From positions 62,001 through 126,000 of the forward strand of contig CDRNVI010000027.1 of assembly GCA_977017575.1 (NCBI GenBank): 64,000 bases of DNA, read 5' to 3'. The position numbers and the translations under genes are program-made. Under the pieces are notes generated by a model. That model did no database searches. It saw nothing but the letters and a program-made list of their open reading frames with translations, and was not told the origin of the DNA. The DNA is from Paramoeba atlantica (lineage: Eukaryota; Protista; Discosea). Positions 1 through 63,854 of the stretch are shown piece after piece; position 1 is the stretch's first letter; every line of letters starts with the position of its first letter.

Positions 1-20
1 AGTCGTTTCTTTGCCTACCG

Positions 21-215
21 GTGCTCTCCTCTGGGTCACTCCACGCGAACACGTTAAACCTGATTCACGAACTTGCAGATGCGTCGCTTACGGACAGGAA
101 CAATGCCATCTTATCATTTAAACTATTGCTACAAGAGCTAAATGAGTCACAAATTTATGCTCAACTGCGAAAGTTCTTAGCAGTAGATACGGAAGCGTCT
201 CAAAAGGCAATTTAA
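21..215 (+). pseudogene. C-terminal end of a family B RLE retrotransposon ORF (partial, runs in from window edge)
   Basis: Identical protein tail (LLQELNESQIYAQLRKFLAVDTEASQKAI*) to the 17168..18760 ORF. Confidence 0.9.
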
Positions 216-584
216 TACTATGAACATACGATGAGATATTTCTTATATCAATACTACACAGATTTAGATATAGAGCTTACAAAGACGCGTAAACTCTTAG
301 TTTTTTTACCTCCCCATCATAATGGGGGGTAGCGCCAGAACAGAAAACTTTTTAATCTAAGGTGTGAAGATGTTCAAGGGAAAATATTAACCCCTTAACT
401 GATTATATCAGTGTTGTTGTTGTTGTTGTTGAACTATGTTTGTGCAAAAAAAAAGACAACGGGAAGAGGCTAACACGGCTGGGTACAAGTTCGCGGCAAT
501 GGTAGTAAAAAAAAAATATCAAGAAACTATCATAATACCGAATATTGAATTTCAATATTATAATTCAAAAAAAAAAAGAAAAAA

Positions 585-1519
585 AAATATGGAACAGATT
601 CTGATTTTGCTTGTCTGCGGAAGGTAAAGGAATCCACTTGAACCTTCGCTGCCTTGGGCTGGTGCATATGAAATCTTGATTTTTATTAGTCCTTTGCGAG
701 ATGTTCTGCCTACGACGACTCCCTTCGATACGTAGTTTGTCGTTTCCTGACGGAATCCCCATTCGATTATGCAAGATGTGCCTTTACCCCACTTTGCTAC
801 GACATTGTGCACATGATCCGGTGCTTTGGAAACGGCGCCCCGATTTGCAAGCTCTTCGATGGCCCCACAATCGCTGTAAAGGGACATCTCGTCACTTTAA
901 TCTTCAGAGAGTTGCTCATCATTTTCGATATCGCGCTGGATCAGTCTTGAGTCTTGAGTCGTTTCGATATCCGACGTTTTTGTTTGTTGTGGGTCGCAGG
1001 CTGATTGGGCGTTTGAAGGCGTGAATCGAAAAGTTTTAGGCTTGATTTTAATGATATTGTCGGAATGCTCGCCGTGTTGTTCGCCATGGCCAGCCCAATC
1101 TTTTGGCAGTGCTACAGATCCTTCTTCGGAGTTCTGGTTTCCCTGGAGGTAATTGGCCTGGTCAGTCCCGTGGTCTGCCCAAATCTTTGAAAGAAGAGGT
1201 TCTCCTCCGACGATTCTGATGCGTGGCGTTTTCTTCGGTTTGGTCGGTGGGGGGGTAGATGCTTTTATTCGAGGTATGCGCGTCTTTGTCGTGGTGGGGG
1301 GAATAGTCTCATCAAAAGTGTCACCCGAAACGTCATTGACTATGCACTTTTTCTCACTGTTCTCTTGGCCCCTCTTGTCTTGCATTCGTGATTTCACTTT
1401 TAGTCTACCTGTTTTCAGGCCCAAGCCTTTCGATGTCTGAGAGTCTGCTCGAGCAAGGCGTGCGTGGGCAAGGCGTGTCATAGCGATTAAATCAAAAAAA
1501 AAAAAACAAGGTACAGAAA
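585..1519 (-). pseudogene. SL-headed 5' fragment of a family B element (MTRLAHARL..., frameshifted, truncated); mirror at 15864-16798 (+)
   Basis: SL 3' fragment TTTCTGTACCTTGTT at 1505-1519, ATG at 1481. Downstream WGKGTSCIIEWGF...LYLPQTSKIRI segment is homologous to the N-terminal domain of the 6003..9122 ORF. Confidence 0.8.
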
Positions 1520-1522
1520 GCA

Positions 1523-1770
1523 CCCATCACCGAAGAAACAAGCTACAACCACTCGAAAGTGTGTGCTGGTAGACAGACTCATCGCAATGGGCCTGATTTG
1601 GTTATCCATTGGCAAAGCGGAGAAATCTACTACGATCTGACCGTCATTCATGAGCTAGCGCCGTCGCGAATTCAACAAAAATGTGGACGCCTCATTAATG
1701 AAGCCATTAAACGGAAGCAAGCAACGTACGTCGCATCCGGATTGATTCCCGCATTATCTTTTCAGTGTCG
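1523..1770 (+). pseudogene. Internal RLE endonuclease fragment, family B (mirror 15613-15860)
   Basis: NGPDLVIHWQSGEIYYDLTVIHELAP...EAIKRKQATYVASG matches the RLE domain of intact family B ORFs. Confidence 0.85.
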
Positions 1771-1915
1771 CCTTTCACCAGGTCTTTGTTTGCCTGAAAC
1801 TGGTCCCATGAACCGAGCTTGTGCGCGCCCGCTTCGCGATCAAAGTTGGATTCCTGTTTTGCTTTAGAGCGAGTTAGAACCATGGAACGTGAGAAAGATT
1901 AAGAAAAGAATTGCT

Positions 1916-1970
1916 CAACAAGGTACAGAAACTGTATCAACAAGGTACAGAAACTGTAGCTTTATCGTTA
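1916..1970 (-). other. Tandem spliced-leader copy (full SL + 22-nt relict), mirror of 15413-15467
   Basis: Reverse complement reads TAACGATAAAGCTACAGTTTCTGTACCTTGTTG-ATACAGTTTCTGTACCTTGTTG. Confidence 0.9.
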
Positions 1971-2757
1971 ACGCCGCTGTTTTTTTCTTTTTTTTTCTTC
2001 GTTGCCTTCGCCCACCCCTCGCCACCCCCTTGGTCGCCCTCTGTTGCCCCCTGCATCGCTCTGCCGCGCCGCTTTTCGCCCCCCCACCCACTGCGCCGTC
2101 CCCTTCGCCGCCTATTCCCCCTCCCTCCCTGCTCCCACCTGCGCCACTCTTTCCCTTCCCACTCTTTCCCTTCATCCCCTCTGCTACCCCCTCACGCTGC
2201 ATCTCGAAGAATGGCGCCGCCCGGTACCGAATATAACAAGGTACTAAAAAACTAGGGTAGGCGTCATTCACGCTTTTCTTTTCTTTTTTCTTTCTTTCTG
2301 CGGCTTGCAACTAGCCCATGATAACGGGGCTAGGGTAACAATTTGGAGAGATACGAGCTTGTTGAAGCTGAGGTTTGGCCTGTTGAAGCTGAGGAGCCAG
2401 TCCGCTCGAGGGGATACCACCCTAGAAGACTTGGTCCGTTGAAGCTGAGGTGCTAAAACCGTTGAAGCTGAGAGTCGACACTCCCAAACTATGCCAGCAA
2501 GCAGGCAAGGGGTCAAGGAGCACTGCTTTTTTCCAGTGTCGGGGTGTGGCGAACCCCACTCTCCTAGCTAATCCAGCTTCCCGCAGCGGACTTTCAGTCT
2601 GCGCGTTAGCTGGATCGGCTTGCATTGGCTCTGTGCTGCAATCCTTTTAGGTCTGCGCATGGGTCGTGCGGGTCGGAGCTACCTTCGGCTCTCTCCGAGG
2701 AGGCAACACCCCGTCTACGGGGTTTTTACCTGAAAAACAAACAAACAAACAAACATT

Positions 2758-2982
2758 TGCCGTCTCAAGTATACATTGCGCCTTATCACCAATTTTCTTT
2801 AATAGATCCGCATTTTCGAGTGTTGTATAACCATCTAGTTGAAAACTGATGCGATGTCGATGCCAAAACTGCCATACGTGCTCGGAGTCTACATGCACCA
2901 CGAAGTCTCCTTCTTGTTGATGTCCGATTGTCAAGGCTTGTAGAAAAGCACGTAGTTCTGCTCGTATGGGGGTTCGATCTTG
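2758..2982 (-). pseudogene. RNase HI-like fragment (mirror 14401-14625, +)
   Basis: RAELRAFLQAL...VHVDSEHV...GY...ENADLLKKI resembles the RNase HI E and D motifs and the N-x-DL segment. The first Asp motif is not visible. Confidence 0.6.
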
Positions 2983-3117
2983 TTTTGAGAGTTCTTGTTG
3001 CTCTATAAATGTACATCTTATATAGTGGGAAAAGGTCTGGAACCAGAATATTTTCGATGTATAGATGATCATGGGGGCCGAGTTTACTATAGAAGGGGGG
3101 TCGGCCTTTACATGTAA

Positions 3118-6100
3118 ACTAGCTTTAATAGCAGAACAAACATGCATTTTCCTGTCTGATTAAAAACGAGAGGGAGATCATCTCTTTTGGTCCACTGTCT
3201 GAACTTATATGGTGTATTGTTCTTCCTTGTCGGGAGTTAAATATTTTTGCATCTGCAACAGAACTATGTTCCCGTTCAGTTCTTGGAGGTACAGGGCAAA
3301 GTCTTCTAATATATGTTGCCGTGAAATAAGGCAACGATCTGCTAAAGCTGTTAATAGACGTTTTGTATGCTTATGTAGCGCTCCACCCGAAAGGACAGGG
3401 ATACACATGAAACGATCATTCGCAATCATCCCAGAAGTTACGTAACGGTCGCGTTTCTTCGTGATGACTTCGTTCATCATTTTTTGAGGCGTTTTGTTTA
3501 TGTGAGCTGCTGAAAACTCGTGAACTACAGTTAGGTCATAATACATCGGACCGTCTGCCCAGTAGATCATAAGGTCGGGCCCAGATCTGCGGACACTGCC
3601 GCGACAGCTGCGCTGGTGTTCTGTGAGATTTTCCTCGGTTACACTATTCTGGCATCCGGAGCACTGAAATGAAGAAAATTGCCGAGCTTCTTTTTCACAG
3701 GTGAGGCCGCTCTTCAAGCAAAGCTCATAGATGTACCGAACTAAGGCGTGGTGTTTGGTTGTCACATTTACTCCTGCACATTTTGCGCACCCAGGGATAT
3801 GATTTAGTATGGTAGATGACGTAAGGAGACTTTTGCACCCAGGGCATTGAACATCGTCCGGGATTTGTGGGTGGTGTAGTGCGAATCTCGGCATAATCGA
3901 TAATTTGAATGCTGAACTAGGCACTAGACGAGCTTTGGATGTGAGCCAAGCGTATTGACCCTTGTGAGACGCTAGTTTGATGATGGGCGCAAGTGTTTTT
4001 TCCTCTATTAAGGCTTGACGGACCTTGTTGTGGTATTTTGCTTCACTAGCTTGCTCATCGAAATTGATGTAGGGGTCGCGAGAATCACCATCAACCGGAG
4101 TTGGCGCATTCATCGTTTGGGTTGCCCGAGCTGAAGAGGGTTTTCGATGCTCAAGAGCAGCAAATTTTGAAGCGCTGTACGAAGATTCACGTAGTGGTTC
4201 GATGGGGGTGATTCCCAGTCCACCCTTGCGCGTCGGTAGCCAAGATATCTGTCGGTCCGTGAGGTTGCCTAGCCAAGCCTTGAGGGTTTTATTTACTTCT
4301 GCGTCGAAATTAGAGGCCATATCCAGAGTTTGTTGTGGATCATGTACCCGAATGTGGTAACGGTGTCTGATGTTTACGCACTTTGATAGTAGTAGAGTGG
4401 ACACATTGTTGATCCCCATTTTTTTTAGTCTACGAAATGCTGATTGGTGCTTCTGTAGAATCTCACAAAGTTTCTGACTGATACAATCTGGATCACCAAT
4501 GTATGCGCCAAGAATTTTTATGATTTCAAACTCACATCTTATGCCTTGATCGTGTAGTAAATCAGGAAGCTGTATCTTATTCTTCCCTCCGAACCAGACA
4601 CATTTCGTAGGCGCAACTTCTAAGCTGTTCGCCGTCAGGAGTGCACGTAACCGGTCGAAGGCTTTCGCCAGGAGGGTACTGTTTGCTGAGGCCAAGTTGA
4701 TGTCATCAATGAAGGCAAAGATTTTGATTCCAGGAAATTCTTCTGCCAGCGTCTCGAGTATTGGTTGCATCAAAGCGCAAAAGTAGAGCGTCGAGAGAGG
4801 GGAGCCTTGACGCACGCCAGAGGAACTTTGCACCACTCCTGCCAATTTCCCGTCTGCGCCGTAGAAAATAAGCTCGGATGGATCTGCGTACTCAGCTGTG
4901 AACATCCTTCTGAAAGGTCTCAGTGTGGAAAAACCGAAAACACATCTTGATATGTCGTCGCGGGACGGCGAGTTAAATGCGTTACGGAGGTCTACCGAAA
5001 GAATCGCATGCCCTAAGCGATGTAAGTCAGTTAATTCGTGTATTACTTTTTCGCAACCGCTCTTCATCATTACCCCGTATTGGTATGGCGCGAACAGTGG
5101 GGGTAAAGACTTTTCATAGCGCTGAAGAAGAAGTATTTCCGCGAGTTTCAAGATTACCTCACCCATTGCAATCGGTCTGACACCATTGTCCGGTTTCGGA
5201 AGCGCTAGGAGCCTGGCTCGTTTAATTCGGTGCATGATATCTTTGGACAGATTTCCATTTACCAAATCCCTCATCATGTGGCAGAGGCATGAGCAACAGA
5301 TCTCGTCATCGAGAAGAATGCGTAGGATACCGTCCGTCATGCCAGAAGGACCTGGAGCAGCCCCCTTTGCCAGACGTCTGCCTGCTTCTCGCAATTCAAC
5401 GGATGTGACACATGCGATAGCGGGTGCATCGGTGGGGGGTTGGAAACTGCACGGCAATTGTGGGTGAAGAGCCTCTAACTTTGCAAGAGTTTCAGCGTCG
5501 GATAATCGACCTTTTCTTACCTCTATGTCCAGAACCTTTGTTGCTTTGGAGGTGCAACCCTTCAAAGCAAGACGGATAGCTTTTTTTGCCGCACGTATAT
5601 CTGCCTTTTCGAGGTTTTCCTCTGCAGGTGAACACTGCAGGCTTGTTGACTTGTTGACTTTTCTTATTCTGACAACCTTCACTTTTATGTACCTGGGCGC
5701 TGGGGCGCCGCAAGCGACGATCGGAGTGCGCGGAGGATTTCGAGGAAGTAGAGTGCCTTCGGACACGTCAACGTGGGAATTGTTCGACGAAATCCATGGA
5801 GTTGTTGCACAATTTGTGTGGATCGGTCATTGGAATGACATCAAGTTTATGTTTCTTTCGAGCGCCAAAAGTCCTTTTCTGCTCAGGAAACAGAATGCGT
5901 TGGTGTATTCTCGGGGGGCAGGTTCGCATATCTCGGCAACGGATGTGTCGCAAATAGTTCTTGAGCCTTTAAAATCTCTTTCTGCTCGGACCATGTGCCA
6001 AATCATTCTTTGCGGGTTCTTTGCGCTATGATTTCAACGGATGTCGAAGTGCCGAGGGACAAGTCGACGTGCGTGACGACAGGTACAATTCGTAAAGCTG

Positions 6101-6335: not shown

Positions 6336-9065
6336 CCAGCAGCGACATTCGGGCAACCCAATTCCTCGCGATTTGAAAAGTGAGTGAAGAAAGTCAGAAT
6401 CCCCGTTAGGGGGATACGGAGAGATGGGATAGAAGAAGCCTTTTAGAGATGCCTCGTGGCGTTGCAACAGAATGGAACCGCATATTTTTAGCACTGTATC
6501 ACCCATCGCGATTGGTCGTATGCCGTTTTGTGGTTTCGCAAGGGCAATAATTCTACATCGAGTTAATCTGTTGCGTACCGATGCGCATACATCACCATTG
6601 ATGACGTCCCTGAGCATGTGACATAGCGCGGTACAGGATTCGTTGTCGTCGGCTAATAGGCGGAGGATATTCTCACCGAGGCCTGTCGGCCCCGGGGCCG
6701 CTCCAAGACCACCTTCCTTCACCGGTAACCGAGCCAACGCTTTTTGGTGTATGTCCAGCGGTCCGAACCAAGTATTTAAAACGTCATCTACCTGTTGATC
6801 GAACTGCTTAGTAAGTTCAAAACATTCTTGCGGCCGATGTACCCGGATGTGATATCTATGACGAACATTCACGCATCTCGCAAGCAACAAGAGTGAAATA
6901 TTATTGGGACCCATTGCTTTGAGACGTCGAAAGATGGCTTCATGTTTCTTTAACTTTTCAAGGAGTAAACTGCTCACTTTGTTGGTTTCCCCGACGAAAG
7001 CATCATATATGCTGTCCATATATGCTCGGATCCTGACTTCAGGAAAAAGATCGGCTACTTCAGCTAGGATGGGATGTATTAAGCTACAAAAGTAGAGAGA
7101 TGAGAGCGCTGAACCTTGTCGTACCCCAGATGTGCTTTTGATTGTTGAATAGAGTGTGTTGTCAGCAAAGAAAAGAAGATCAGATGGCTCGGAGTACTCT
7201 AGGAAAAAGAGGCGCATAAATGGTCTGAAAACATCATGCTTTTGAAGAGTTTCTGCAATGGCGATTCTGTTTGGTGTGTTGAATGCGTTAGTGTAATCGA
7301 CTGTGACGATCTTGTGGTCTGCCTCGTATTCTTCTATCAGTTCGTGCACAATTTGCTCACACGCATTCTTTTGTAGTATGCCTCGTTGGAAGGTTTGAAA
7401 GTGCTTTTTAAGCGCGTCTTCATGTCGTTGCAAAAGAATGATGCCACACACTTTAAGGATGGTCTCTCCTATAGCGATCGGGCGCAGTTTATTTATTTGT
7501 TTGGGCAAAGCTACTAATCTGCATCTTGTGAGTCGATCACGCACCGAGTTTGGAATGTCGCCATTGATCACGTCGCGAAACATGTGGCATAAGCAAATGC
7601 TGCATTCTTCATCGTCGGCGAGAAGTCGCAACATCGATTCGCTGAAACCTGTAGGTCCGGGGGAAGCACCCTTTGCCAATTTGCTGGCCGCTAAGAGGAG
7701 TTCGGCTCGTTCAACAATTCCAATGCGCGGAAAGTCAACACTCATCGGCATTTGAGGCGTTTTCCCGGAAGGATGGAGACTTTTTAGAAGAGAAACTTTT
7801 TCTTCGACAGTCAGGGGTGATTGTTTGTGGACGTTATCGAGAATACGCGTTGCTTTGCCTAGGTTTCCTGCTTTTGCCGTTCGTAAAGCATTGCGGATCG
7901 CTCGGCGGTCAGTTTCTAACTCTTCTTGTTCTTCTTGGCTGAGCTTGTCGACGTTGTATTCATATTTACTTTTACTTTTCGGCGCGTGAGTCGTGGCTCG
8001 TGTTCGCATTAGCATTTTCCTCACAGTGGTCAAAGCATCTCTCGGAGCATTTAGGAACCTGTGCCATAGGGTTTCTTTTTCGGACAGAAGTTGTAAACGA
8101 GGATATTCGCGAATTGTCTCTCTGAAAATTGAAACCACATGTACAGCAAAGGACGGTTCTATTTGAGCTAGCGGTGGAAGTGGTTCCATGTCTCTGTGCG
8201 TGTCGGATTCCTTCGTCGTCTCTGACATGCTCTCCGGAAAATTTAGCGTGTTTACTCCTTTGCTTGGTATTCGATTTATCTTCGTAGCACAGATTTGAAA
8301 GACTCGCACTTTGTCAGACTGTGGAAGAAAGAGGTTTCCTTGGGGTCCGGTTTGTCCTTCAGCAGGGGAGTACGCAATCTTTATACGAACCTGACCTTTC
8401 CTTGAGACGCGGGACACTCCTTCGCCGACAGAATAAAAAATTTCTTCTCCGTAGCGGAAGTTCCAAAGGATCTCGCATTGAGTACCGCGGCCCCATTCTG
8501 ATACAATGTCTTGAACTTGGTCTGGCGCTTTCAAACTTCGTGTGCGTGCCAGCTCACTCATACACAGATCGTCGGATGACATTGTTTCAGATGAGGTACT
8601 TAGGCCATCGGTGTCCGCTGACATGTCGTCTTCATTTTGCGGCGCATTTTCAGTTATTTGGGGAGACTTCGATGGCATATCTGAGCTTGTTTGATCCGAA
8701 GGTCGTGAGTCTCCGATGATAACTTTGATTTTCCGTGGTTTTCTTTGTCGTGATTCTTGTCTTGTGATGCATTCTCGCGGTTCGATGTTCATTTCGTCTG
8801 AATTTGTGGAGTTGTCGTGAATGTCGCTGATTTTGTCCATAATCTCGTTTAGACCTTTGCCCTTTAGACTACCTACTTTTCCTTTCCATTTCTTCGACAC
8901 TTGAGGTAGAATTGGTGTAGGGTAGTGTATTTCGTTCCAGTCGCTCTGTGGGTCGATATTGGATTCGTTGGTCGAGCGCTGCTTTGCAAGTTTGGAGCGC
9001 GTTAGCACAACCATAAAGTTTTTGTAAAGTTTAACGAAAAAAAAAAAAACAACAAGGTACAGAAA
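6003..9065 (-). pseudogene. SL-headed chimeric family B ORF (true start 9014, MVVLTRSK) with an internal RT deletion and jumps into other subfamilies
   Basis: SL 3' 16-mer at 9050-9065. RT runs to RAYMD, then skips to AFVGE (about 7020). After GGLG it jumps back to an AAPGPTG segment of another subfamily (about 6710-6420). No RLE domain. Confidence 0.85.
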
Positions 9066-9069
9066 ATTA

Positions 9070-9685
9070 TTGTTACGCCGTAACTTCGCATGAACTCTAC
9101 AGCTTGATGCAAACGGAAACATTTACGTAGAGCAAACTCGTCTGTGGTTTTACACTTTAAAGTATCTACATTCATGGTGCTTACTGCAAACCCCTCTCTC
9201 ATAGCTTTGATCTTGGGTCTCTGCTCTCGGTAGCCACGCCGAAAGCAGGATTTGCGTTTCCGATTACGTTTGCGCAAAGATTTTGGAAGCAGTCCAACTC
9301 TGCCGCCTAGCACATGTATACGATCATCTCTCGGAGGAAACGTGAGAAGGCGCCCATTCATCAAGTCGTACTTGACGAGCCAACCAGACCCATCAAGCGA
9401 TGAGTGAACCACCCCTTCCCAGAGTGTAATACGTTCGTTATAAGCCATACACCAAACAACAGCCACGCGTTTTCCCACAGCCAAAACCTTTGACATCTGT
9501 AAAAGGGCCCGCTGCCGGAGTTTTGTCCCAACCCCCCTCTGCTGTGGAGGCAGAAAAAGGTTGCCCCGACCACACCTGGCCGTCCGAAGTTTGCCACAGA
9601 CTTCCAACACACTTTCGAACGGTCCGGAGGCCTCCGCCATTTTGTACCAACGTATTAATACAAAAAGTGGCGACGGGAATGCCAC
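9070..9685 (-). pseudogene. Truncated ORF of unknown origin with a Tudor/SH3-like segment, cut at the SL-headed element
   Basis: VGKRVAVVW...LWEGVV...WLVKY...FPP pattern at 9484-9296. The frame runs into the SL at 9065. Confidence 0.45.
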
Positions 9686-14265: not shown

Positions 14266-15412
14266 TTACATGTAAAGGCCGACCCCCCTTCTATAGTAAA
14301 CTCGGCCCCCATGATCATCTATACATCGAAAATATTCTGGTTCCAGACCTTTTCCCACTATATAAGATGTACATTTATAGAGCAACAAGAACTCTCAAAA
14401 CAAGATCGAACCCCCATACGAGCAGAACTACGTGCTTTTCTACAAGCCTTGACAATCGGACATCAACAAGAAGGAGACTTCGTGGTGCATGTAGACTCCG
14501 AGCACGTATGGCAGTTTTGGCATCGACATCGCATCAGTTTTCAACTAGATGGTTATACAACACTCGAAAATGCGGATCTATTAAAGAAAATTGGTGATAA
14601 GGCGCAATGTATACTTGAGACGGCAAATGTTTGTTTGTTTGTTTGTTTTTCAGGTAAAAACCCCGTAGACGGGGTGTTGCCTCCTCGGAGAGAGCCGAAG
14701 GTAGCTCCGACCCGCACGACCCATGCGCAGACCTAAAAGGATTGCAGCACAGAGCCAATGCAAGCCGATCCAGCTAACGCGCAGACTGAAAGTCCGCTGC
14801 GGGAAGCTGGATTAGCTAGGAGAGTGGGGTTCGCCACACCCCGACACTGGAAAAAAGCAGTGCTCCTTGACCCCTTGCCTGCTTGCTGGCATAGTTTGGG
14901 AGTGTCGACTCTCAGCTTCAACGGTTTTAGCACCTCAGCTTCAACGGACCAAGTCTTCTAGGGTGGTATCCCCTCGAGCGGACTGGCTCCTCAGCTTCAA
15001 CAGGCCAAACCTCAGCTTCAACAAGCTCGTATCTCTCCAAATTGTTACCCTAGCCCCGTTATCATGGGCTAGTTGCAAGCCGCAGAAAGAAAGAAAAAAG
15101 AAAAGAAAAGCGTGAATGACGCCTACCCTAGTTTTTTAGTACCTTGTTATATTCGGTACCGGGCGGCGCCATTCTTCGAGATGCAGCGTGAGGGGGTAGC
15201 AGAGGGGATGAAGGGAAAGAGTGGGAAGGGAAAGAGTGGCGCAGGTGGGAGCAGGGAGGGAGGGGGAATAGGCGGCGAAGGGGACGGCGCAGTGGGTGGG
15301 GGGGCGAAAAGCGGCGCGGCAGAGCGATGCAGGGGGCAACAGAGGGCGACCAAGGGGGTGGCGAGGGGTGGGCGAAGGCAACGAAGAAAAAAAAAGAAAA
15401 AAACAGCGGCGT

Positions 15413-15467
15413 TAACGATAAAGCTACAGTTTCTGTACCTTGTTGATACAGTTTCTGTACCTTGTTG
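15413..15467 (+). other. Tandem spliced-leader copy heading an LsmAD-element stub (ATG 15500, truncated at about 15612)
   Basis: 33-nt SL, 22-nt relict, 32-nt UTR, then MVLTRSKAKQ...GSWDQFQANKDLVKG. Confidence 0.9.
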
Positions 15468-17167
15468 AGCAATTCTTTTCTTAATCTTTCTCACGTTCCA
15501 TGGTTCTAACTCGCTCTAAAGCAAAACAGGAATCCAACTTTGATCGCGAAGCGGGCGCGCACAAGCTCGGTTCATGGGACCAGTTTCAGGCAAACAAAGA
15601 CCTGGTGAAAGGCGACACTGAAAAGATAATGCGGGAATCAATCCGGATGCGACGTACGTTGCTTGCTTCCGTTTAATGGCTTCATTAATGAGGCGTCCAC
15701 ATTTTTGTTGAATTCGCGACGGCGCTAGCTCATGAATGACGGTCAGATCGTAGTAGATTTCTCCGCTTTGCCAATGGATAACCAAATCAGGCCCATTGCG
15801 ATGAGTCTGTCTACCAGCACACACTTTCGAGTGGTTGTAGCTTGTTTCTTCGGTGATGGGTGCTTTCTGTACCTTGTTTTTTTTTTTTTGATTTAATCGC
15901 TATGACACGCCTTGCCCACGCACGCCTTGCTCGAGCAGACTCTCAGACATCGAAAGGCTTGGGCCTGAAAACAGGTAGACTAAAAGTGAAATCACGAATG
16001 CAAGACAAGAGGGGCCAAGAGAACAGTGAGAAAAAGTGCATAGTCAATGACGTTTCGGGTGACACTTTTGATGAGACTATTCCCCCCACCACGACAAAGA
16101 CGCGCATACCTCGAATAAAAGCATCTACCCCCCCACCGACCAAACCGAAGAAAACGCCACGCATCAGAATCGTCGGAGGAGAACCTCTTCTTTCAAAGAT
16201 TTGGGCAGACCACGGGACTGACCAGGCCAATTACCTCCAGGGAAACCAGAACTCCGAAGAAGGATCTGTAGCACTGCCAAAAGATTGGGCTGGCCATGGC
16301 GAACAACACGGCGAGCATTCCGACAATATCATTAAAATCAAGCCTAAAACTTTTCGATTCACGCCTTCAAACGCCCAATCAGCCTGCGACCCACAACAAA
16401 CAAAAACGTCGGATATCGAAACGACTCAAGACTCAAGACTGATCCAGCGCGATATCGAAAATGATGAGCAACTCTCTGAAGATTAAAGTGACGAGATGTC
16501 CCTTTACAGCGATTGTGGGGCCATCGAAGAGCTTGCAAATCGGGGCGCCGTTTCCAAAGCACCGGATCATGTGCACAATGTCGTAGCAAAGTGGGGTAAA
16601 GGCACATCTTGCATAATCGAATGGGGATTCCGTCAGGAAACGACAAACTACGTATCGAAGGGAGTCGTCGTAGGCAGAACATCTCGCAAAGGACTAATAA
16701 AAATCAAGATTTCATATGCACCAGCCCAAGGCAGCGAAGGTTCAAGTGGATTCCTTTACCTTCCGCAGACAAGCAAAATCAGAATCTGTTCCATATTTTT
16801 TTTTCTTTTTTTTTTTGAATTATAATATTGAAATTCAATATTCGGTATTATGATAGTTTCTTGATATATTTTTTTTACTACCATTGCCGCGAACTTGTAC
16901 CCAGCCGTGTTAGCCTCTTCCCGTTGTCTTTTTTTTTGCACAAACATAGTTCAACAACAACAACAACAACACTGATATAATCAGTTAAGGGGTTAATATT
17001 TTCCCTTGAACATCTTCACACCTTAGATTAAAAAGTTTTCTGTTCTGGCGCTACCCCCCATTATGATGGGGAGGTAAAAAAACTAAGAGTTTACGCGTCT
17101 TTGTAAGCTCTATATCTAAATCTGTGTAGTATTGATATAAGAAATATCTCATCGTATGTTCATAGTA

Positions 17168-23235: not shown

Positions 23236-23396
23236 AAGACCCTGTTTTAGAACCCTGTTTTTTTTTTTACATTTGCCGTCTCAAGTATACATTGCGCCTT
23301 ATCACCTGTCGTGATCTCGTCTTCCGGAATATAGTTTTATAAGATAATAACTTGGTACCGAATGAGTAAACAGTTGCGTGGGTGACTGCTTTTTTT

Positions 23397-26382: not shown

Positions 26383-26409
26383 TTTCTGTACCTTGTTGCT
26401 ATTCTTACC

Positions 26410-31850: not shown

Positions 31851-32716
31851 TCGACTTACTTTGAATTTGAAGATACGATACCAAAAAGAAAAAAAAAATG
31901 TAGCAGTGAATATCGAGAAGCACGGGCACGGTGAGCGATACGGAATTTCCTTATGATTTATTTTGGCGGAGTAGGCACCGCTGAAATACATCAACGTGCG
32001 ATTGGGTTGTAAATGGAAGTAGGACGAGCGAATGGGTGGTCCCCGCGTCACCCGTTCGCAAGCTGGGAGAGGACAGAAGTGTTGTGGGATTATTTAATTT
32101 TGTTATGTTATGACCGGTCATACAGTATTCATATGAATTTTGAATGTGCATAGAATTGAACGTATCAAATATCAGATAGAAGAGGGGAATGAAGATATTG
32201 TTTTGCTTAGTGCTTTCTTTCTTTCTTATAATATTTATGATGCACAATTCTCATAGTTTACGGAGAGAATTGGGCGAATAAATTATTTACGTTATACCAG
32301 TTTATCTATTGTGTGATGGCCGAGGGGCATTGTACCTGTTGTAAGAATTCAACTGATTTGATATATACACCCCCCAGATGTAACCCCATGTGTATACAGA
32401 CGAATATGACGTTTGCTATGGTGATTATAAATTCAAGACTTTATTTCCTTTGTTAATTCGCGACAGTTAAAGTTTCTAATGACCGTGGTTGACGATCCTT
32501 CAACGCGAGCTTTACGGTCGTCGCGTAGTTCTTCCCCTACTGCTGAGTCGCTCGTGCCTACCGAGCCGCTCACGCAGCAGGAATTAAGTCTCGTTTGTAC
32601 GGTGGCCAGAGAGCGATTATTTGTGAAACCCTCGGTGCAGGTGCAGGCATCTTTCCGTCGCAAGGATGATCGTAATGGTGCTCGACAAACGTTGATGGGC
32701 AAGTTGCGCAAGGAAC

Positions 32717-35700
32717 TTCTGTACCTTGTTGGTTTGTTTTTTTTTTCCTACTCTTTTTCCGAAAATGGGCATGCTGACGCGTGCCAAGGCGAAGGATGCC
32801 GGGGTAGCTCCCATAATCAGCGCATTCGTATAAAATTGTATTCGTGAAGATTGAAAAACTCAAATCAAGTGTAAAATACATTAATGTAATCCTACCCTTC
32901 GTCAAATCCATCGAATATGTTTGTACATCAATATATAAAGTATAAAGTAAAACAACATATGTCACTTAGTAGCGCTACTATAATTCATTTTCTCACAGTA
33001 CTAACGAATGGGAAACTACTTCAATAGCCTCCGGGCGGGTGGGTGGGAAAAACACTTCGCTTACTTATGCTAAGGCGCTTTCCTGCTCCCCCGCCCCCAG
33101 ATCGCCACACAGAGACGGTGCCGTTAGAGAAGAAGACGCAGAGGTACCGATCAATGATATAGTTCTGCGGCCGCTAAATCCGTCAGCTCGGATTCTTTCT
33201 GACGAAGAATTCTACCTCCAAAGAAAAGAGCGCAAACAAGCTCGCTGGGAATTTCACGAAGCTTTACGCCAAGAAAGGCTAGCGAAACTCCCCGCTGCAC
33301 AGGACATCGAGTCGCATAGAATTTCTGAGCCGTGTAACACGTCGCCTCTTCCGGAGGAAGTCATCGAGTCGCGTATCACAACTGAGTCTCATACCCCCCA
33401 GCCGCATACCCCACTTCTCCATCCACCGCTCCCTCCGCCAACTCCAGCGAACAAAGCAACGGTTAAAATACCCGCGAAATTGTTTTCGAAGGACCTGTTT
33501 TCGAACCTTTTTTGTCGACGCGGCAAGAAAGCGACGGTAAACGCACCAGTTTTAGCAGATAGAATGCCACAAGATGCAGAAGAGGAAGGACACCACGAGA
33601 ACCCGCCGTCGGAAAACAATAACCATAACGACAGTGAAGAACCAGAACAATTTTTCGACTGCGAAGGAAACGCTGACGACACTGCTTCAGCAAAGACGCT
33701 GGCACTATCTTCGAGTGAGTCGTTGACAATTCTTGCCAACTCCATGTGTCAAGAAATTGATCCTGCTGTTCACTTTCCCATTCCCCCGGACGAAGTATCC
33801 AGATTGTCTGACAACGCGAAGCCAGGGGATCGGTGCCTGGTAGCATGGAGCTTTGACTGCACGCCCATCCTAAACGTATCGAGTGGCACTGTTAAAACAT
33901 CTCGGAAAGTGCGAAACGTTCGAAAACTAGCGTTAAGTTACGAAGGCATCATTGGACACAATATTGGTGAGGTGTTTGATGGGCATATTCCCCCTCATTC
34001 CAACGTTCGCATCTTTCGACTGTTGTGGGAACCGCGCGTACAACAGAATAGCGAACCGAGTAAAACGTACGCGCGCCGACAACATACTGAGGACGATCTC
34101 GATCGCGAACCGATGCCGACATTACGCACAGTGTCTCCAGAATATATTCCTTGCGTCGTTGCGATTTATCGCGATATAATGCGGGAATATGCCGATAGTT
34201 CTTATCCACACCGCTACCGCATCTGGCATAGAGTTCTCTCTGCCATGAAATACTCTCTGGCAACTATTCGAAAAGTTACGGTGAAGCGCCGCCGTCGCCG
34301 TCCATTGGACTCACATGACGATCAAGAATCATCGCAAGAGAATCATGAATTACAAAGATCAGAAGGAACTGTACCGAACGCTGACGCGAACGATAAACGC
34401 GCTATTAAAAAGGCGACAAGCCTGGTCCTCGACGGGTGTGTCTCGAAAGCTTCGCAAATTATGGACCGAGAAATTACGGCGAAATCACTAAGCGACGAAG
34501 AAATCGTGGAAAAACTCATAGCACTCCACCCGAATCTCCCAACGAGTTTCCGATTGCCACAAGACGCCCCTATCACCGCATGCATTACCCCCAGCGAGCT
34601 GAGAGAGGCTGGCAGACGACTCGCGAAAGGTGCTTCACCGGGGCCTACGGGTACGACGGACTCGATAATACGTATTCTCCTGGACGATGAGGTTTGCTGT
34701 TTGAGCTTAACTCATATGTTCACAGACCTGATCAACGGGGTACTGCCTGAAGAAGTAATGAAGCGTCTTAAAAGAGCGCGACTCGTCGCAATTCCGAAAA
34801 CAGCGCAAGGAATTCGACCGATTGCCGTAGGTGAGGTGTGGCTCAAAATCGCCGAAATTGTATTACTACAGCGCCACGAGAAAACATTACCCCCTCTGTT
34901 TTCGCCACATCAGTTCGGAGTGATGATTAAATCTGGCTGCGAAAAAGTTGTGCATGAACTTGATGAACGCTACGCGGAAGGATGCGCCATCTTATCGATT
35001 GACCTTAAGAACGCCTTCAACTCCCCATCACGGGACGAGATTGCCAGAGCAGTCTTTGGATTCCACAGCCTACGTCCATTCTTACGCCTCTTCAATGCGG
35101 AGTACGGGTCTCCATCCGAGCTGCTTTACTATGGAAAAGATGGCCGACTTTGCAACACTGTAATGAGCGCTGCTGGCGTGCGCCAAGGGTCCCCCTTATC
35201 CACTATCTTGTTCTGCGCTTTTCTTCAACCAATCTTGGAAACAATCGCGTCCGAATTTCCCACGCTACGTATTTATGCATTCGTTGATGACATCAATTTT
35301 GCATCGACTGACGCAGAAATGGTATCCAATGCATTCTTACGGCTTAAGGAACTGTTGACGTCGAAACGCGTAGAGACTTCCTCCAGTAAATGTATTTGGT
35401 TCGGGGGAATCAATCATATCCCTTTGCCGCATCAGTTAATGCAGGAAGGTGTAAACTGGGAGCCAGGCGCCACAAAGGTTCTAGGAGCATTCGTGGGCGA
35501 CAGTCATCTGGTCAGCGAAAAACTTGTTCAGATGCTTCAAAAACACCGTACAGCATTCCGACGTCTTCAGCAAATGGGGGCAAACAATGCTTCTGTTCTT
35601 TTGCTTTCCAAGTGCATTAATGTACGCCACCGATATCATATCCGCGTACATCATCCGGAAAATACATCGGAGCTCACGAGACAATTTGACGGAGAAGTTT

Positions 35701-45148: not shown

Positions 45149-45168
45149 ACGATAAAGGTACAGTATCG

Positions 45169-48100
45169 TAACGATAAAGATACAGTTTCTGTACCTTGTT
45201 GAATTCTTTTCTTAATCTTTCTCACGTTCCATGGTTCTAACTCGCTCTAAAGCAAAACAGGAATCCAACTTTGATCGCGAAGCACAAGCTCGAGAGGGCG
45301 CGCACAAGCTCGGTTCATGGGACCAGTTTCAGGCAAACAAAGACCTGGTTAAAGGCGCTAGCACATACAAGGAAGAGCTGTACACGACACCACTTCCGCC
45401 GGATCCTTCATCAGAATTAGAACAACGGGCCGAAGACATTGCCCTCAGCATTACGAACTCCATCGAAGGCGTGACACCAGACACAGGGCGTCAGCAAACG
45501 AGCTCGGAAGAAGAATTATTTTCCAGCGTCCGTCCCACCGAGAATTCCGTTTTCCAGTTTTTTTTTTTTTTTTTTTTTTTTTGCTATTCACAAATGTCGC
45601 TTGCAACACTTATGACCACGGAGAGACGGGCGAGACGTGATCTCCTTTACCCCCCATTATCTTCCCTCTACCTTATATCCCATACCGTAAACTTATAATA
45701 GCTATATTAATTATACTTTTTTTTTTCTTCAAGTTTCCAATGTTTTTGTTTTTAATGTCAAATTCTAGAGGCCCATGTTTTGTGAATCGTCATTAGATAA
45801 AAAATTTCTCAGCTGAGAGAATATAATCGACCCATTTAACTCCTGCAGGCACAGAGAAAATTCGTTCAGTGTTCGGACCCTATCAAGTCCGCTGCAGTCC
45901 GCCAACGTATGCAACAAGTGCCGGAGCCCGTGATGCATAGCACCACCGGAGAGGACTGGGAGGCATACGAAACGCTCTTGAGGTATCATCCCGGAAGCCA
46001 CGTATGTGCTGTGCTTGCGCGTAATGGCCTCTCTCATCAGGGTACCGCTACGTTTCCGTGCATTAGTGGGCGCCAGCTCGTGAATTATTGTTAGGTCATA
46101 AAAGATTTCCCCAGTTGCCCAATGTATTACAATGTCAGGTCCTGACCGATGGAGGCTCGCATTTCTACAAACTTTTTGATGATCAGTTTTTCGCCATTGT
46201 GGGAACGATTCCCCGCATGTAGAGCATTTAAAAGAAGTAAACTGTCGAGGTTCCCTTTCGCATGGCACACCCGCCTTCATGCACAGTTCATAGATAATAC
46301 GCACCAGATTATTATGTTTCATTGTTGTATTATTTCCGGAACACTGGACGCATCCAGCTATGTGCGAAAAGGCTGATGAAGAATCCAGAAGGGTGCGACA
46401 TCCTGGGCATTGCAGACTTTCGGGAATACGAGGGTGGCTTAGACCAAGACGTGGCATCAAAGCTAATGTGAAGAATTTGGAAGGCACTAACTTTGCCGTC
46501 GAATGAAGCCACGCGGAGTTCCCTTTTTCACTTGCTGCTCTCAGCACTGGTGCAATTTTCGGGTCCTTACTCAACGATTCTTTCTCCAGTTCGAAGGGGC
46601 CGCTCCTTCTTCACTCAGCCAATCGAAATCTACAAACAAGGCTGTGAAGGAGAAATGCGAGCGCCACAACCGGGGGATAGCTCGTACCGAATACAATTAT
46701 GACGACGACAAATTAATTTTCCCCGACCTGACGCCTCAAGACCTCGACTTTTCGTTGAGCGGTGGAACCAAAGTAAGGAAAAAGAAAAAGCGCCCTAAAG
46801 GGATCTCACTTTCCCAGCTACATACCCAGTTATGCACCGAGTCTGGGGGCGACAGTGATGACCGTGACTCCACAGATGCGTCAACAAGTGTTCACAGCTC
46901 TCCGGCTGAATCACCCCTGAAGAAGTTAACCCCGAAAACGGCTGTAGGCAAACGTAAACGTCCCCAGCAGGTGTCGAAAACTACCTCCCCTGACGCCCCC
47001 AAAGCTGAAACAATGAACAATGCCCCCGAACCGACCCCAACCCAAAACTGTGCGATAGAAAAAACACACACCACGCATGAAAATACGCGAAAATGTCCCT
47101 TCGAGGGATGTACTTGGAAAACAGGGCCCCACGGGGGCCAATGGCAGGCATTCCACAACCACGTAGCAAACAGACACGGTGATGAGGTCCCAGACGAGTG
47201 GTGGAAAGACGAAGGACGTTTTAGGTGTCATGATTGCAATAAACATTATGATCAAGGCAAACGGGAAACCCACGACAAGATCTGCATGTTCCGCCATTCC
47301 TCTCCTCAAAGCCGTCCGTCGCCCTCGACGAGCAGTGCCGATCCTGTTCTAAGCCCCAATGTGGACTCGAATGCTCTGCCTGCCCTTAACTCACCTTCCA
47401 CACCCTCTCATCAAAGCGTAGTAAGCGAAAACGTGAAAGTCTCCGACACACCCCTTCCGAGTTTATCCTCTATCAGTGCGCTACTTATTAACACTTGCAA
47501 GGACATCCCCAACAGTTGCCGACAAGAATGGGCTAAAACACTCTGCGGTTGCTTATCCACAGCAGCGAGAGAGAACACGCTCGAGGCATGGACACTCCTC
47601 GCCATGCTGCCCAAATGCGTCCTACCCGCCCCTCATCGCGGAGGTAACCGCGCAAAAGCCTCTTACGCCTCCCATGTAAAGAAGTGCCTCGCGAGATGGT
47701 CCAACAAAGATTTCCTGGCGCTTTGGAAAGAAGCTGTCTCGAGTGTATCACGCAAAAAGAAAAATGTACCACAAGCGCTTACCATAGACGAAGAAGTAAA
47801 GAAAGCGGCTTTACGGGCAGAACGGCTTGTCCGCGACGCGGAGCTCTCCCGCGCCATGACAGCATTAACTTCGGAACCACTTGCCCCTGACGACGACGCC
47901 ACCTACTCGAAGCTCCAGGCAAAGCATCCTCAGAGACTTGACAGCACTTTCAACGTGGCAAGCCCTTCAGCGCCGGAAGCAAAACCGCTTGAAGCAACGG
48001 AAGACGAAGTAGCCGAGGCCCTAGCGACTTTCCACCGAGGGTCCTCGGGAGGGGCCTTCGGTATGCGGCCGGAGCACGTTCAGGCCGCGATGCAGTACCA

Positions 48101-50509
48101 TCACGACGCGTACACCGATCCTCTGGGCACGCTTACGAAGTTTACCAATCACTTGCTCGCAGGAAAAGCACCGTTGGAAGTCAAAGATTATTTTGCGGGT
48201 GGTCGGTTATGCGCCCTGAAAAAGGGTGAACACGATGTTCGTCCAATTGCTGCCGGAGAGACCCTTCGCCGCTTGGCAAGCAAAGTTGCCTGCCTCTCCG
48301 CAAAATTCAAGGCCCGAAAACTCTTCAGAGGGCACCAGTACGGCGTAGCCACACCTGCTGGAGCCGAGCGCATCATCCACCTCTGTCGGAAGACCTTCGC
48401 CGAACATATTGAGGATGACGACTTCCTGCTATGCAAAGTCGACCTCAAAAACGCTTTCAATAACGTCTCACGGGATTTCTTTGTGGCCCTAACACGCCAG
48501 CATTTCCCTGAGCTGGGTGCGTACGTGGAGTGGTGTTACAACACTCAAAGCATTCTGACCTTTGGCTCACGCTTTATCGAATCATCTGAAGGGGTGCAAC
48601 AAGGCGACCCCCTGGGCCCTCTGCTCTTTTCGCTTGTGATGAAAGAAGTTTCCCTACAAATCCACACTGCCGCTCCGAAACTCGCTTTAAACCTGTGGTA
48701 CTTAGACGACGGGATACTTGCCGGTCCATCCTGCGACGTTCGGCACGCACTAGACGTGATCGCGATGTCCGGCCCGAAATGGGGATTGCATATCAACGTG
48801 GCCAAGTGCGAGATCGCAACACACCCAGCTTCCTCCCATCGTTGCTCACTTTTCCCTGACATCCCCGGTCTGAACACGAATTCGGCAGGAAATTTTCATA
48901 TTTTGGGGAGTCCAATTGGTTCGACAGAATTTTGCCGCGAATTCTTTCTCAAGAACACAATCGACATGGCAGAGGCCTCTCTCGAGGCCATAGCTACACT
49001 TGAAGATCCCCAGGTGGCCCTTTCCCTCATACGCCACTGTACTGGTTTCTGTAAAATGGTTTACTCGCTCAGGACTACCCCGACAACGGAACTTCAAGAT
49101 ATCTGCCAACGCTTAGATGGTGCCGTCCAGCGCACTATTGAACACTTCTTCCGTCCTTTGAGTGATGGGGCGCGACGCCAGGCGCAACGCGAAAAGCGGT
49201 ACGGGGGGTTGGGCCTTCGGTCGGCGGGGGAACATTCGAGTGCGGCTTACGTTGCCTCCGTAGCTTTCTCAACGGACAAAGACCGTTGGGACCCAGCGGA
49301 CGCTGAGGGCTTTGACCATGCCGTGCGGGAGGTGAACAGGCGTGCCGGAAAGACGGTGGTCCAACAAGGCGGCAAAATTCCGAAAAGTATGGCTTTGGCG
49401 ACTGATTCTCCGTATACCGACGCGCAGGAATCCGGAACAGAACTGGTGATTCCCCGACAACGCGACCTTAGCCACGCCATCGCCAACCAGGAATTTCACG
49501 AGGCATTTGCGAAAGCTGACCTTCGCACACGGGCCAGATGGATATCAGAAACAGGAGAAGGAGCCTCAGAATGGGCTTTTGTGATCCCCTCCAAGAAAAC
49601 CGGTCTGGCTTTCACACCGACGGAGTTTCGCACCCTCACGCGCTGGTGGCTAGGGGACCCAATCTATCCAGCGTCCCGGCCTTGTCCTATGGAAAAATGC
49701 ACGCTACCGCTAGATCCCGAGGGTGACCACGCTCTGGGGTGCAAAAGCGGGCATGGTATAATCGCACGCCACAACGCACTAGCGGCACAGTTTACTTCTG
49801 AATGTAAAAAGGCCGGTTTCACCCCGCGGAGAGAAGTGAGTCTGGGCAACAAGGGTCCTGGGGGCGCCCTCACCAGGCCCGGAGACGTGTTCATCCCTAC
49901 AATCGGGCTAGGCCAGTCTCTTGTATTAGACTTCGCCGTCACTCATGTTCAGCAACCAAAGTATACGGACTTAGTCCGTGATGCTAACTGGGTGACGGCG
50001 GGGTCTTTTGCGGAACGATACGCCACCGAAAACAAAAAGAAGCAAAGAGAGGAAGCAGAGTTCGCACGCCATCGATTTGGAGCGATGGTCGTGGAATCTT
50101 ATGGAGCGTGGAGTCCAAGCGCCTTTGCGATCCTCAAGGAGGTTTCCGTCTCTCGTGCGGCATACTCCGGGGGTACCCTTTCGAACGGGGAAGTCTTACA
50201 CCAATTGGTGACGTCACTTAACATCACTCTGATGCGGACACAGGCTCGGATGCTGGTACTCCGACTTCCCGCGGCGGTCCCTGACACGGCCCTCCTTGGA
50301 TATGGGAACGATGAGTAATTCGGTCCCCCCCAATCATTTAACAGCCGCAGGGGGGGGAGGGTGTTTCTCTGCGAAAGGGGGGGGGCAAGGGGGGGTACCA
50401 AGTCACTAACCGACGTGCCGTCACGGGTCTTAGTTTTGGTGCGGGAGTGATTTGATTAGGGGTGGATTTCGGGTAGAATTGTTTGCTAGTTTTTAGTCAA
50501 AAAAAAAAA
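45169..50509 (+). mobile_element. Full-length SL-headed family A element with N-terminal LsmAD; reconstructed ORF 45231-45559 + 46592-50318 (1351 aa)
   Basis: Full SL 45169-45201. Removing 45560-46591 joins ENSVFQF to EGAAPSS in frame. C2H2 fingers, GVQQGDPLGP, WYLDDG, RPGD. Confidence 0.9.
45560..46584 (-). mobile_element. 5'-truncated family B 3' end inserted in the LsmAD element
   Basis: Poly(A) (T-run from 45558); TSD TCCAGTT at 45553-45559 and 46585-46591; ORF 45765..46574 encodes knuckle plus RLE. Confidence 0.92.
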
Positions 50510-63806: not shown

Positions 63807-63854
63807 ATTAAAGGAACCGCGTACCTGCAAAAAGATGGAATAAGGAAAATAATT

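Follow-up and report, generated by a model that had tools for sequence, protein, structure and literature searches.

A stacked spliced-leader relict heading a dead retrotransposon fragment in Paramoeba atlantica and its probable origin in two rounds of trans-splicing and reverse transcription

In Paramoeba atlantica, a fragment of an R2/CRE-type retrotransposon carries at its 5′ end a DNA copy of the spliced leader (SL) stacked directly on a second, shorter copy of the same leader. The locus, referred to by its first base as the 15412 locus, lies in a window of 64,000 nucleotides (assembly GCA_977017575.1, contig CDRNVI010000027.1, positions 62,001 to 126,000), which is the whole stretch of DNA that was analyzed. 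Read from the sequence, the outer SL piece, TTAACGATAAAGCTACAGTTTCTGTACCTTGTTG, runs without interruption into the inner piece, ATACAGTTTCTGTACCTTGTTG (Table 1). The initial annotation had described this arrangement as a full SL followed directly by the SL minus the part up to its first AG, and the sequence, the reads, and a second assembly agree with that description. The end of the outer piece at the SL 3′ end and the start of the relict after an SL AG are boundaries that are meaningful only at the level of RNA splicing, and the pattern fits trans-splicing, a process that recognizes the SL 3′ end. Judged from sequence comparison, the stack was probably produced by two rounds of splicing and copying, in which the AAAG within an older, DNA-encoded leader would have been used.

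The leader is defined by a genuine SL RNA gene (G000:C3:779248-782268), which reads AACTTTAACGATAAAGATACAGTTTCTGTACCTTGTTG|GTATGAGAAGC and continues into stable hairpins. The SL exon is 38 nt long and of the kinetoplastid type. The gene is arranged in 1454-bp tandem repeats, each of which also harbors, in the opposite orientation, a 5S rRNA gene. The same SL gene, with a different upstream flank, is present on a JGI metagenome contig, and the exon is therefore placed to start at AAC. This contig, the single one found, is itself an SL RNA gene, and the metagenome match was accordingly rejected as a transcript. A dinoflagellate leader, the precedent that the initial annotation had cited, was rejected, with 0 matches to the dinoflagellate SL in the window. 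The 15412 locus is not a genuine SL RNA gene either; its SL is followed by the relict and a UTR, with no GTATGAG donor.

Compared to the SL exon, the outer copy has one mismatch, C for A at SL position 17 (15424), and lacks the first four SL bases. Thus, the “full” leader of the initial annotation is complete at its 3′ end but not at its 5′ end. The internal AGs of the outer copy are at 15422-15423 and 15428-15429. The 22-nt relict directly abuts the complete 3′ end of the outer copy, and its first base corresponds to the one immediately behind the first AG within the SL (AAAG|A), such that the AAAG|ATACAG boundary is found at this locus. The trinucleotide that separates the relict from the UTR is missing from the paralogues, whose junctions read SL|AATTC... 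(45202, 57893) or, in the majority of genomic copies, SL|ATTTATTTTC... The window contains a 20-mer from the SL core 10 times (0 expected). Of the 42-nt stacked form, the 45.7-Mb genome has two occurrences only, both within the window. They lie on opposite arms of an inverted duplication of 4.2 kb (1-4239 vs 17382-13144, 99.93% identity) and therefore stand for one event. The left arm of this duplication may extend past the window start, and a contig of a second assembly matches it at 99.98%.

Table 1. Positions, in the window, of the stacked SL head, its surroundings, and related SL heads
Feature	Position	Strand	Basis or remark
G-rich 3′ end (GGCGAAGGCAACGAAG) and A-rich tail of upstream retroelement	15371..15403	+	read directly
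8-nt linker CAGCGGCG between A-rich tail and SL head	15404..15411	+	motif search
Outer SL DNA copy, SL nt 5-38	15412..15445	+	compared with exon of SL RNA gene
22-nt SL relict, exact SL nt 17-38	15446..15467	+	read directly
AGC, 3 bases missing from SL/UTR junction of paralogues	15468..15470	+	paralogue comparison
Pyrimidine-rich (T-rich) 5′ UTR of the retrotransposon family	15471..15499	+	paralogue comparison
Element ORF1 start (MVLTRSKAKQ...), ATG at 15500	15500..15676	+	homology to full element stops at 15614
Second identical stack (outer SL 1938-1971, relict 1916-1937)	1916..1971	-	other arm of inverted duplication
SL heads starting exactly TTTCTG (SL nt 23), upstream unrelated	9050-9065, 15864-15879, 1504-1519, 26383-26398	-, +, -, +	
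1-nt variant (CTTCTG...) of a head starting at SL nt 23	32716-32731	+	
5′ stutters	45149-45201, 57840-57892		poly(A)+SL3-14+SL3-38 at the first; many other loci

The stack is carried not by a cellular retrogene but by the remaining 5′ end of a non-functional R2/CRE-type non-LTR retrotransposon copy, which lies within a graveyard of retroelements in a genome of the kinetoplastid type. This identity follows from the extent of the homology, since only about 200 nt are common to the element, the sequence beyond 15614 is unrelated, and the frame ends at codon 58. The shared segment (15415-15614 vs 45149-45357, 88% identity) is all that the fragment has in common with the full element, and the ORF that opens at 15500 enters unrelated sequence past 15614 and stops after 58 codons. 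The full-length paralogue spans about 45149-50400. Its ORF2 (46503-50318) contains an RVT_1 domain (3e-17) with R2 proteins (8gh6) as best PDB matches, and zinc-finger and CCHC motifs (C-terminal CCHC/restriction-like endonuclease) were read by eye in the ORF2 region; the R2-type reverse transcriptase assignment thus refers to this paralogue and not to the fragment at 15412. Nearly all large ORFs of the window are reverse transcriptases. A look-up of the 58-residue ORF returned only another assembly of the same organism, and for the 489-residue ORF1 of the neighboring element no record was found. The self-renewing expressed gene envisaged in the initial annotation is hence not what the copy represents. 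As a single dead copy, the 15412 locus owes its value to being the only example of the AAAG-acceptor class.

The poly(A) upstream of the 15412 head belongs to the neighboring element, whose 3′ end and poly(A) abut a different SL head at another locus. In a genome motif search, the linker between this tail and the head has no second copy besides that in the inverted duplicate. No target-site duplication was found for the 15412 copy, which is itself cut off at about 15614. SL heads stand very often directly behind the poly(A) of another element, forming head-to-tail chains of retroelements here and at many loci. Either a preferential targeting of A-tracts or chimeric cDNAs would account for such chains.

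Across the genome, the 16-nt SL tail TTTCTGTACCTTGTTG occurs 963 times, with AG directly before it in 802 of the 963 and GT directly after it in 189. Among the GT-followed loci that were inspected, a small number are true SL genes and the rest belong to a SINE-like family that starts SL|GTAC... In an unselected sample of 80 sites, the head starts at SL nt 1-3 in 39, often right after poly(A), exactly at T23 in 11, with unrelated flanks, and at A11 in 5. The tail and AG-preceded counts likewise put about 160 of the 963 heads at an exact T23 start with unrelated flanks. These T23 starts may reflect a stop of reverse transcription after the U-tract, or something else. Because the flanks of the sampled heads are diverse or poly(A) and never resemble an SL RNA gene context, the SL heads in DNA are copies of trans-spliced RNAs and not insertions into SL genes.

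Several further features of these heads were observed. Full heads usually start at C3, and they often carry AT-CTTTAACG where the SL gene has AA-CTTTAACG; the T at head position 2 could result from misincorporation opposite a cap-proximal base that is modified. Heads reading ...AAAG|TTTCTG, without the six bases ATACAG between the two SL AGs, account for 4 of the 80 sites sampled, with another at C60:427582 and perhaps one at 9066-9080(-) of the window. Truncated heads at G000:C63:458261, C63:509011, C83:364363, and C83:365888 stand immediately behind an 18-nt satellite, (AAAAGAAAGGGTCTTAAC)n, and a motif resembling it precedes the head at 23237-23260(-) of the window. Other heads show a 5′ stutter, in which a partial 5′ SL piece (e.g., nt 8-23, or poly(A) plus nt 3-14) precedes the full SL head. 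The stutters form a class apart from the 3′ relicts and look like template jumping at the RNA 5′ end.

Stacked relicts were collected in two scans. The first required an SL piece complete at its 3′ end, with another SL tail following within 24-30 nt, and returned 25 loci, of which 23 were inspected by sequence, the other 2 being those in the window. The second required only TTTCTGTAC as the first piece and, in a sample of about 75%, returned 45 matches. Stacks are rare (about 5% of heads) and fall into few discrete classes, all behind a complete SL 3′ end; the relict starts are not random, in accordance with the initial annotation. Apart from the 5′ stutters, whose first piece is 3′-incomplete, outer pieces invariably end at the last SL base (...TTGTTG). 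The 16-nt relict, TTTCTGTACCTTGTTG, follows an SL at 13 loci in about 10 unrelated UTR families and is preceded in the SL by ACAG. The 22-nt relict (ATACAG...), preceded by AAAG, is known from the 2 copies of the one context at 15412. Both classes start right after the two internal AGs of the SL. The commonest form is the 10-nt relict, TACCTTGTTG, with about 24 matches in at least 18 UTR contexts (e.g., G000:C5:110540, C1:65007, and C35:33545; none in the window), and this is preceded in the SL by UCUG. Hence the expectation that relicts start after an AG throughout the genome is borne out by the 16- and 22-nt classes but not by the 10-nt class. A double 10-nt stack occurs at C40:99262, and mixed stacks of 16 and 10 nt at three further loci. 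At about 8 loci, a non-SL spacer of about 2-20 nt stands between the outer SL and the truncated inner SL; the spacers seen are AA, G, GG, AAAC, CCTCTA, CATCATCTCA (at C92:27159), ATTACCTTG, and one of 20 nt at C11:179226. An origin of the stacks from SL RNA genes whose exon end is duplicated was considered and rejected, no such gene being present among the stacked matches of the 75% sample.

Because the commonest relict starts after UG, a rule other than “first AG” also operates. An origin of the 10-nt relict from a mutated CAG acceptor was rejected, as heads with TTTCAG (TTTCAGTACCTTGTTG) have 0 genomic copies. An origin from truncated heads behind an AG was rejected as well, since AGTACCTTGTTG gives 7 matches vs 10 for the control, which is the chance level. 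By elimination, the leading guess is that a UG acceptor 6 nt downstream of ACAG makes this relict. TG is an alternative 3′ splice site of U2-type introns in human cis-splicing (PMC2374985). The 10-nt relict likewise follows UG, although the precedent is confined to human cis-splicing and the use of such a site in SL trans-splicing is our extension of it. If made by splicing, the 10-nt class would indicate that SL trans-splicing can use acceptors other than AG.

The proposed sequence of events, like the use of the internal AG as an acceptor, is one that we infer. A trans-spliced element RNA (SL, AGC, UTR, and what follows) would have been reverse-transcribed into DNA. Read-through transcripts of that DNA copy would then have been trans-spliced to a fresh SL, with the AAAG of the DNA-encoded leader as acceptor, and the resulting RNA (SL, 22-nt relict, AGC, UTR) would have been reverse-transcribed again. 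Later, the A-to-C change would have arisen in the outer leader of the copy, all but its first 200 nt or so would have been lost, and the remainder would have been duplicated within the 4.2-kb segment. Spacer stacks are expected if a truncated DNA head is re-spliced at an AG in its flank, and non-SL spacers between SLs are hard to make without an intermediate DNA generation; together with the discrete relict classes, they support recycling through DNA copies. A candidate for the parent type exists in the same family at C40:62703 (poly(A) followed by GATACAG...), which counts for two rounds. Against them count the fact that none of the 9 family copies listed from the 75% sample is a single-SL parent that has the AGC junction, the derivation of the 22-nt class from a single event, and the many T23-start heads (about 160 of 963), which mark hot spots of reverse transcription at the very position where the 16-nt relict starts. 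The only substitution, moreover, lies in the outer and supposedly younger leader, which is thus not the less mutated of the two, but as a single base this is weak evidence. Contigs from four read runs, one of them guessed to be RNA, were DNA-like or generic SL contigs only. The idea of a retroposed and recycled leader in the initial annotation is therefore partly supported: the RNA-derived heads, the classes after AGs, and the spacers speak for it, while the AG rule applies to two relict classes but not to the commonest, and the A/C and UTR arguments fall away.

Of the other origins considered, a single round of copying is unlikely, though by no means negligible. Here, an R2-type reverse transcriptase would switch templates or realign within or between SL-bearing RNAs, with no intermediate DNA copy. 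Enzymes of this type jump between templates and add untemplated bases (PMC8857657), the genome is rich in products of this kind (5′ stutters, the 6-nt ATACAG deletion, and joints of poly(A) to SL), head truncations peak at T23 (11 of 80), which is the start of the 16-nt relict, and the 10-nt relict is not behind an AG. However, the jump would have to land on the exact last SL base every time, whereas the entry points of the stutters scatter over nt 14-31 and never yield a 3′-complete outer piece. Spacers of 6-20 nt are left unexplained as well, and duplications with better predicted microhomology are absent from the 75% sample of the second scan. The predicted duplications in question are those of 6, 7, and an alternative 10 nt, including a 7-nt unit with a 3-nt TGT microhomology, none of which was seen in that sample; microhomology slippage was accordingly rejected as a general cause.

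Replication slippage at the DNA level is quite improbable as the source of the 15412 stack, even though the sequence itself can be read as a plain 22-bp tandem duplication (unit TACAG...TTGA, 15425-15446) whose likeness to an AG-to-SL-end segment is coincidental. TRF reports a perfect 22-nt repeat of 2.0 copies at 15425-15468, with a 1-nt A/A microhomology, and the C at 15424 lies just outside it and requires no additional mutation. Other two-copy tandems (13-45 nt) occur in the window, e.g., at 15210, 23836, and 27057, and the 22-nt class is a singleton. The phase and the period of such a duplication would, however, fall within 1 nt of two RNA-processing landmarks, for which the chance is 1-3% by a rough estimate for a random duplication overlapping the head. 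In the 75% sample of the second scan, SL heads showed no duplication in any other phase, and the duplication background in heads is therefore near zero. The initial annotation had held that the A/C difference between the two leaders excludes a local duplication. This argument fails, given the position of C17 outside the perfect repeat; the variant has no other occurrence in the genome and is private to this locus, so a recurrent C17 leader or a variant SL gene was also rejected. Since every model needs that one substitution, C17 discriminates among none of them. An assembly or sequencing artefact, for which the position of the locus within a near-perfect inverted duplication in a repeat-rich region might speak, borders on the inconceivable: a 145-nt contig derived from one of the read runs covers 15356-15500 with zero differences, and a second public assembly record has the identical stack.

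Beyond the two rounds proposed for the 15412 locus, a broader reading of the same sequences is conceivable, albeit doubtful. The DNA leader may be a portable re-capping cassette of retrotransposons, in which read-through transcripts of any SL-headed copy would be trans-spliced within the old leader at AG16, AG22, and a non-canonical UG28, and most stacks would collapse to a single leader during reverse transcription. Re-capping with collapse, if true, would explain the roughly 95% of single leaders as well as the 5% or so with relicts of 10, 16, or 22 nt.

The closest known system is the DinoSL recycling of dinoflagellates. DinoSL relicts are attributed to the recycling of processed cDNAs (Slamovits & Keeling 2008, reviewed in PMC6050394, PMC5585692), and the number of stacked leaders has been read as the number of retroposition rounds (PMC6050394). 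Leader recycling as such has already been described for genes of dinoflagellates (and Perkinsus). As in DinoSL, a DNA-encoded SL stands at the 5′ end of a retro-copied unit, and a shortened inner copy lies behind a complete outer one. In contrast, the leader here is a 38-nt kinetoplastid-type leader from a different lineage, its carriers are retrotransposons (R2/CRE-type and others) instead of cellular genes, stacks amount to about 5% of heads, the most frequent relict class is not preceded by an AG, and the observations are of DNA. No report of SL relicts in kinetoplastid DNA or mobile elements was found in the literature searched.

The trypanosomatid elements CRE1/2, SLACS, and CZAR belong to the R2 clade and insert inside SL RNA genes, splitting the SL exon and having SL-gene sequence on either side. 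The elements described here share the clade and the physical association with SL sequence, but a 3′-complete SL is fused to the UTR of the element itself, with no SL intron after it. SL-gene-specific insertion of the CRE/SLACS/CZAR type was rejected for the 15412 locus because the poly(A) of another element lies upstream, the GTATGAG intron is absent, and the flanks of the sampled heads are unrelated. A different solution is found in trypanosomatid L1Tc/ingi/SIDER elements, in which the internal promoter Pr77 drives abundant unspliced transcripts from the first base of the element (PMC8190864). Both arrangements bear on how a retroelement can acquire a functional 5′ end when the genome is polycistronic and relies on trans-splicing. 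Unlike that of the Pr77 elements, the 5′ end here is the host SL itself, which implies that trans-splicing acted on the parental RNAs at least. Stacked leaders would, if confirmed, serve as a built-in counter of retrotransposition generations and would provide a handle on how retrotransposons that lack a promoter recover a capped 5′ end at every round in such a genome.

The 5′ UTRs of the elements are rich in T (49%) and poor in G (9%). The initial annotation had taken their frequent lack of AG as a sign of first-AG selection. AG-free UTRs number 43 of 78, and because the T-rich composition alone predicts 46.1 of 78, there is no extra depletion of AG. The UTRs consist of pyrimidine tracts of 20-40 nt, as at 63807-63854(-) of the window and at five further loci. 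When an AG is present, it is often found at the end of the tract before the ATG (...CTTCCAG|ACCATG, ...TTTGCAG|GTACGCGG), where it looks like a built-in trans-splice acceptor.
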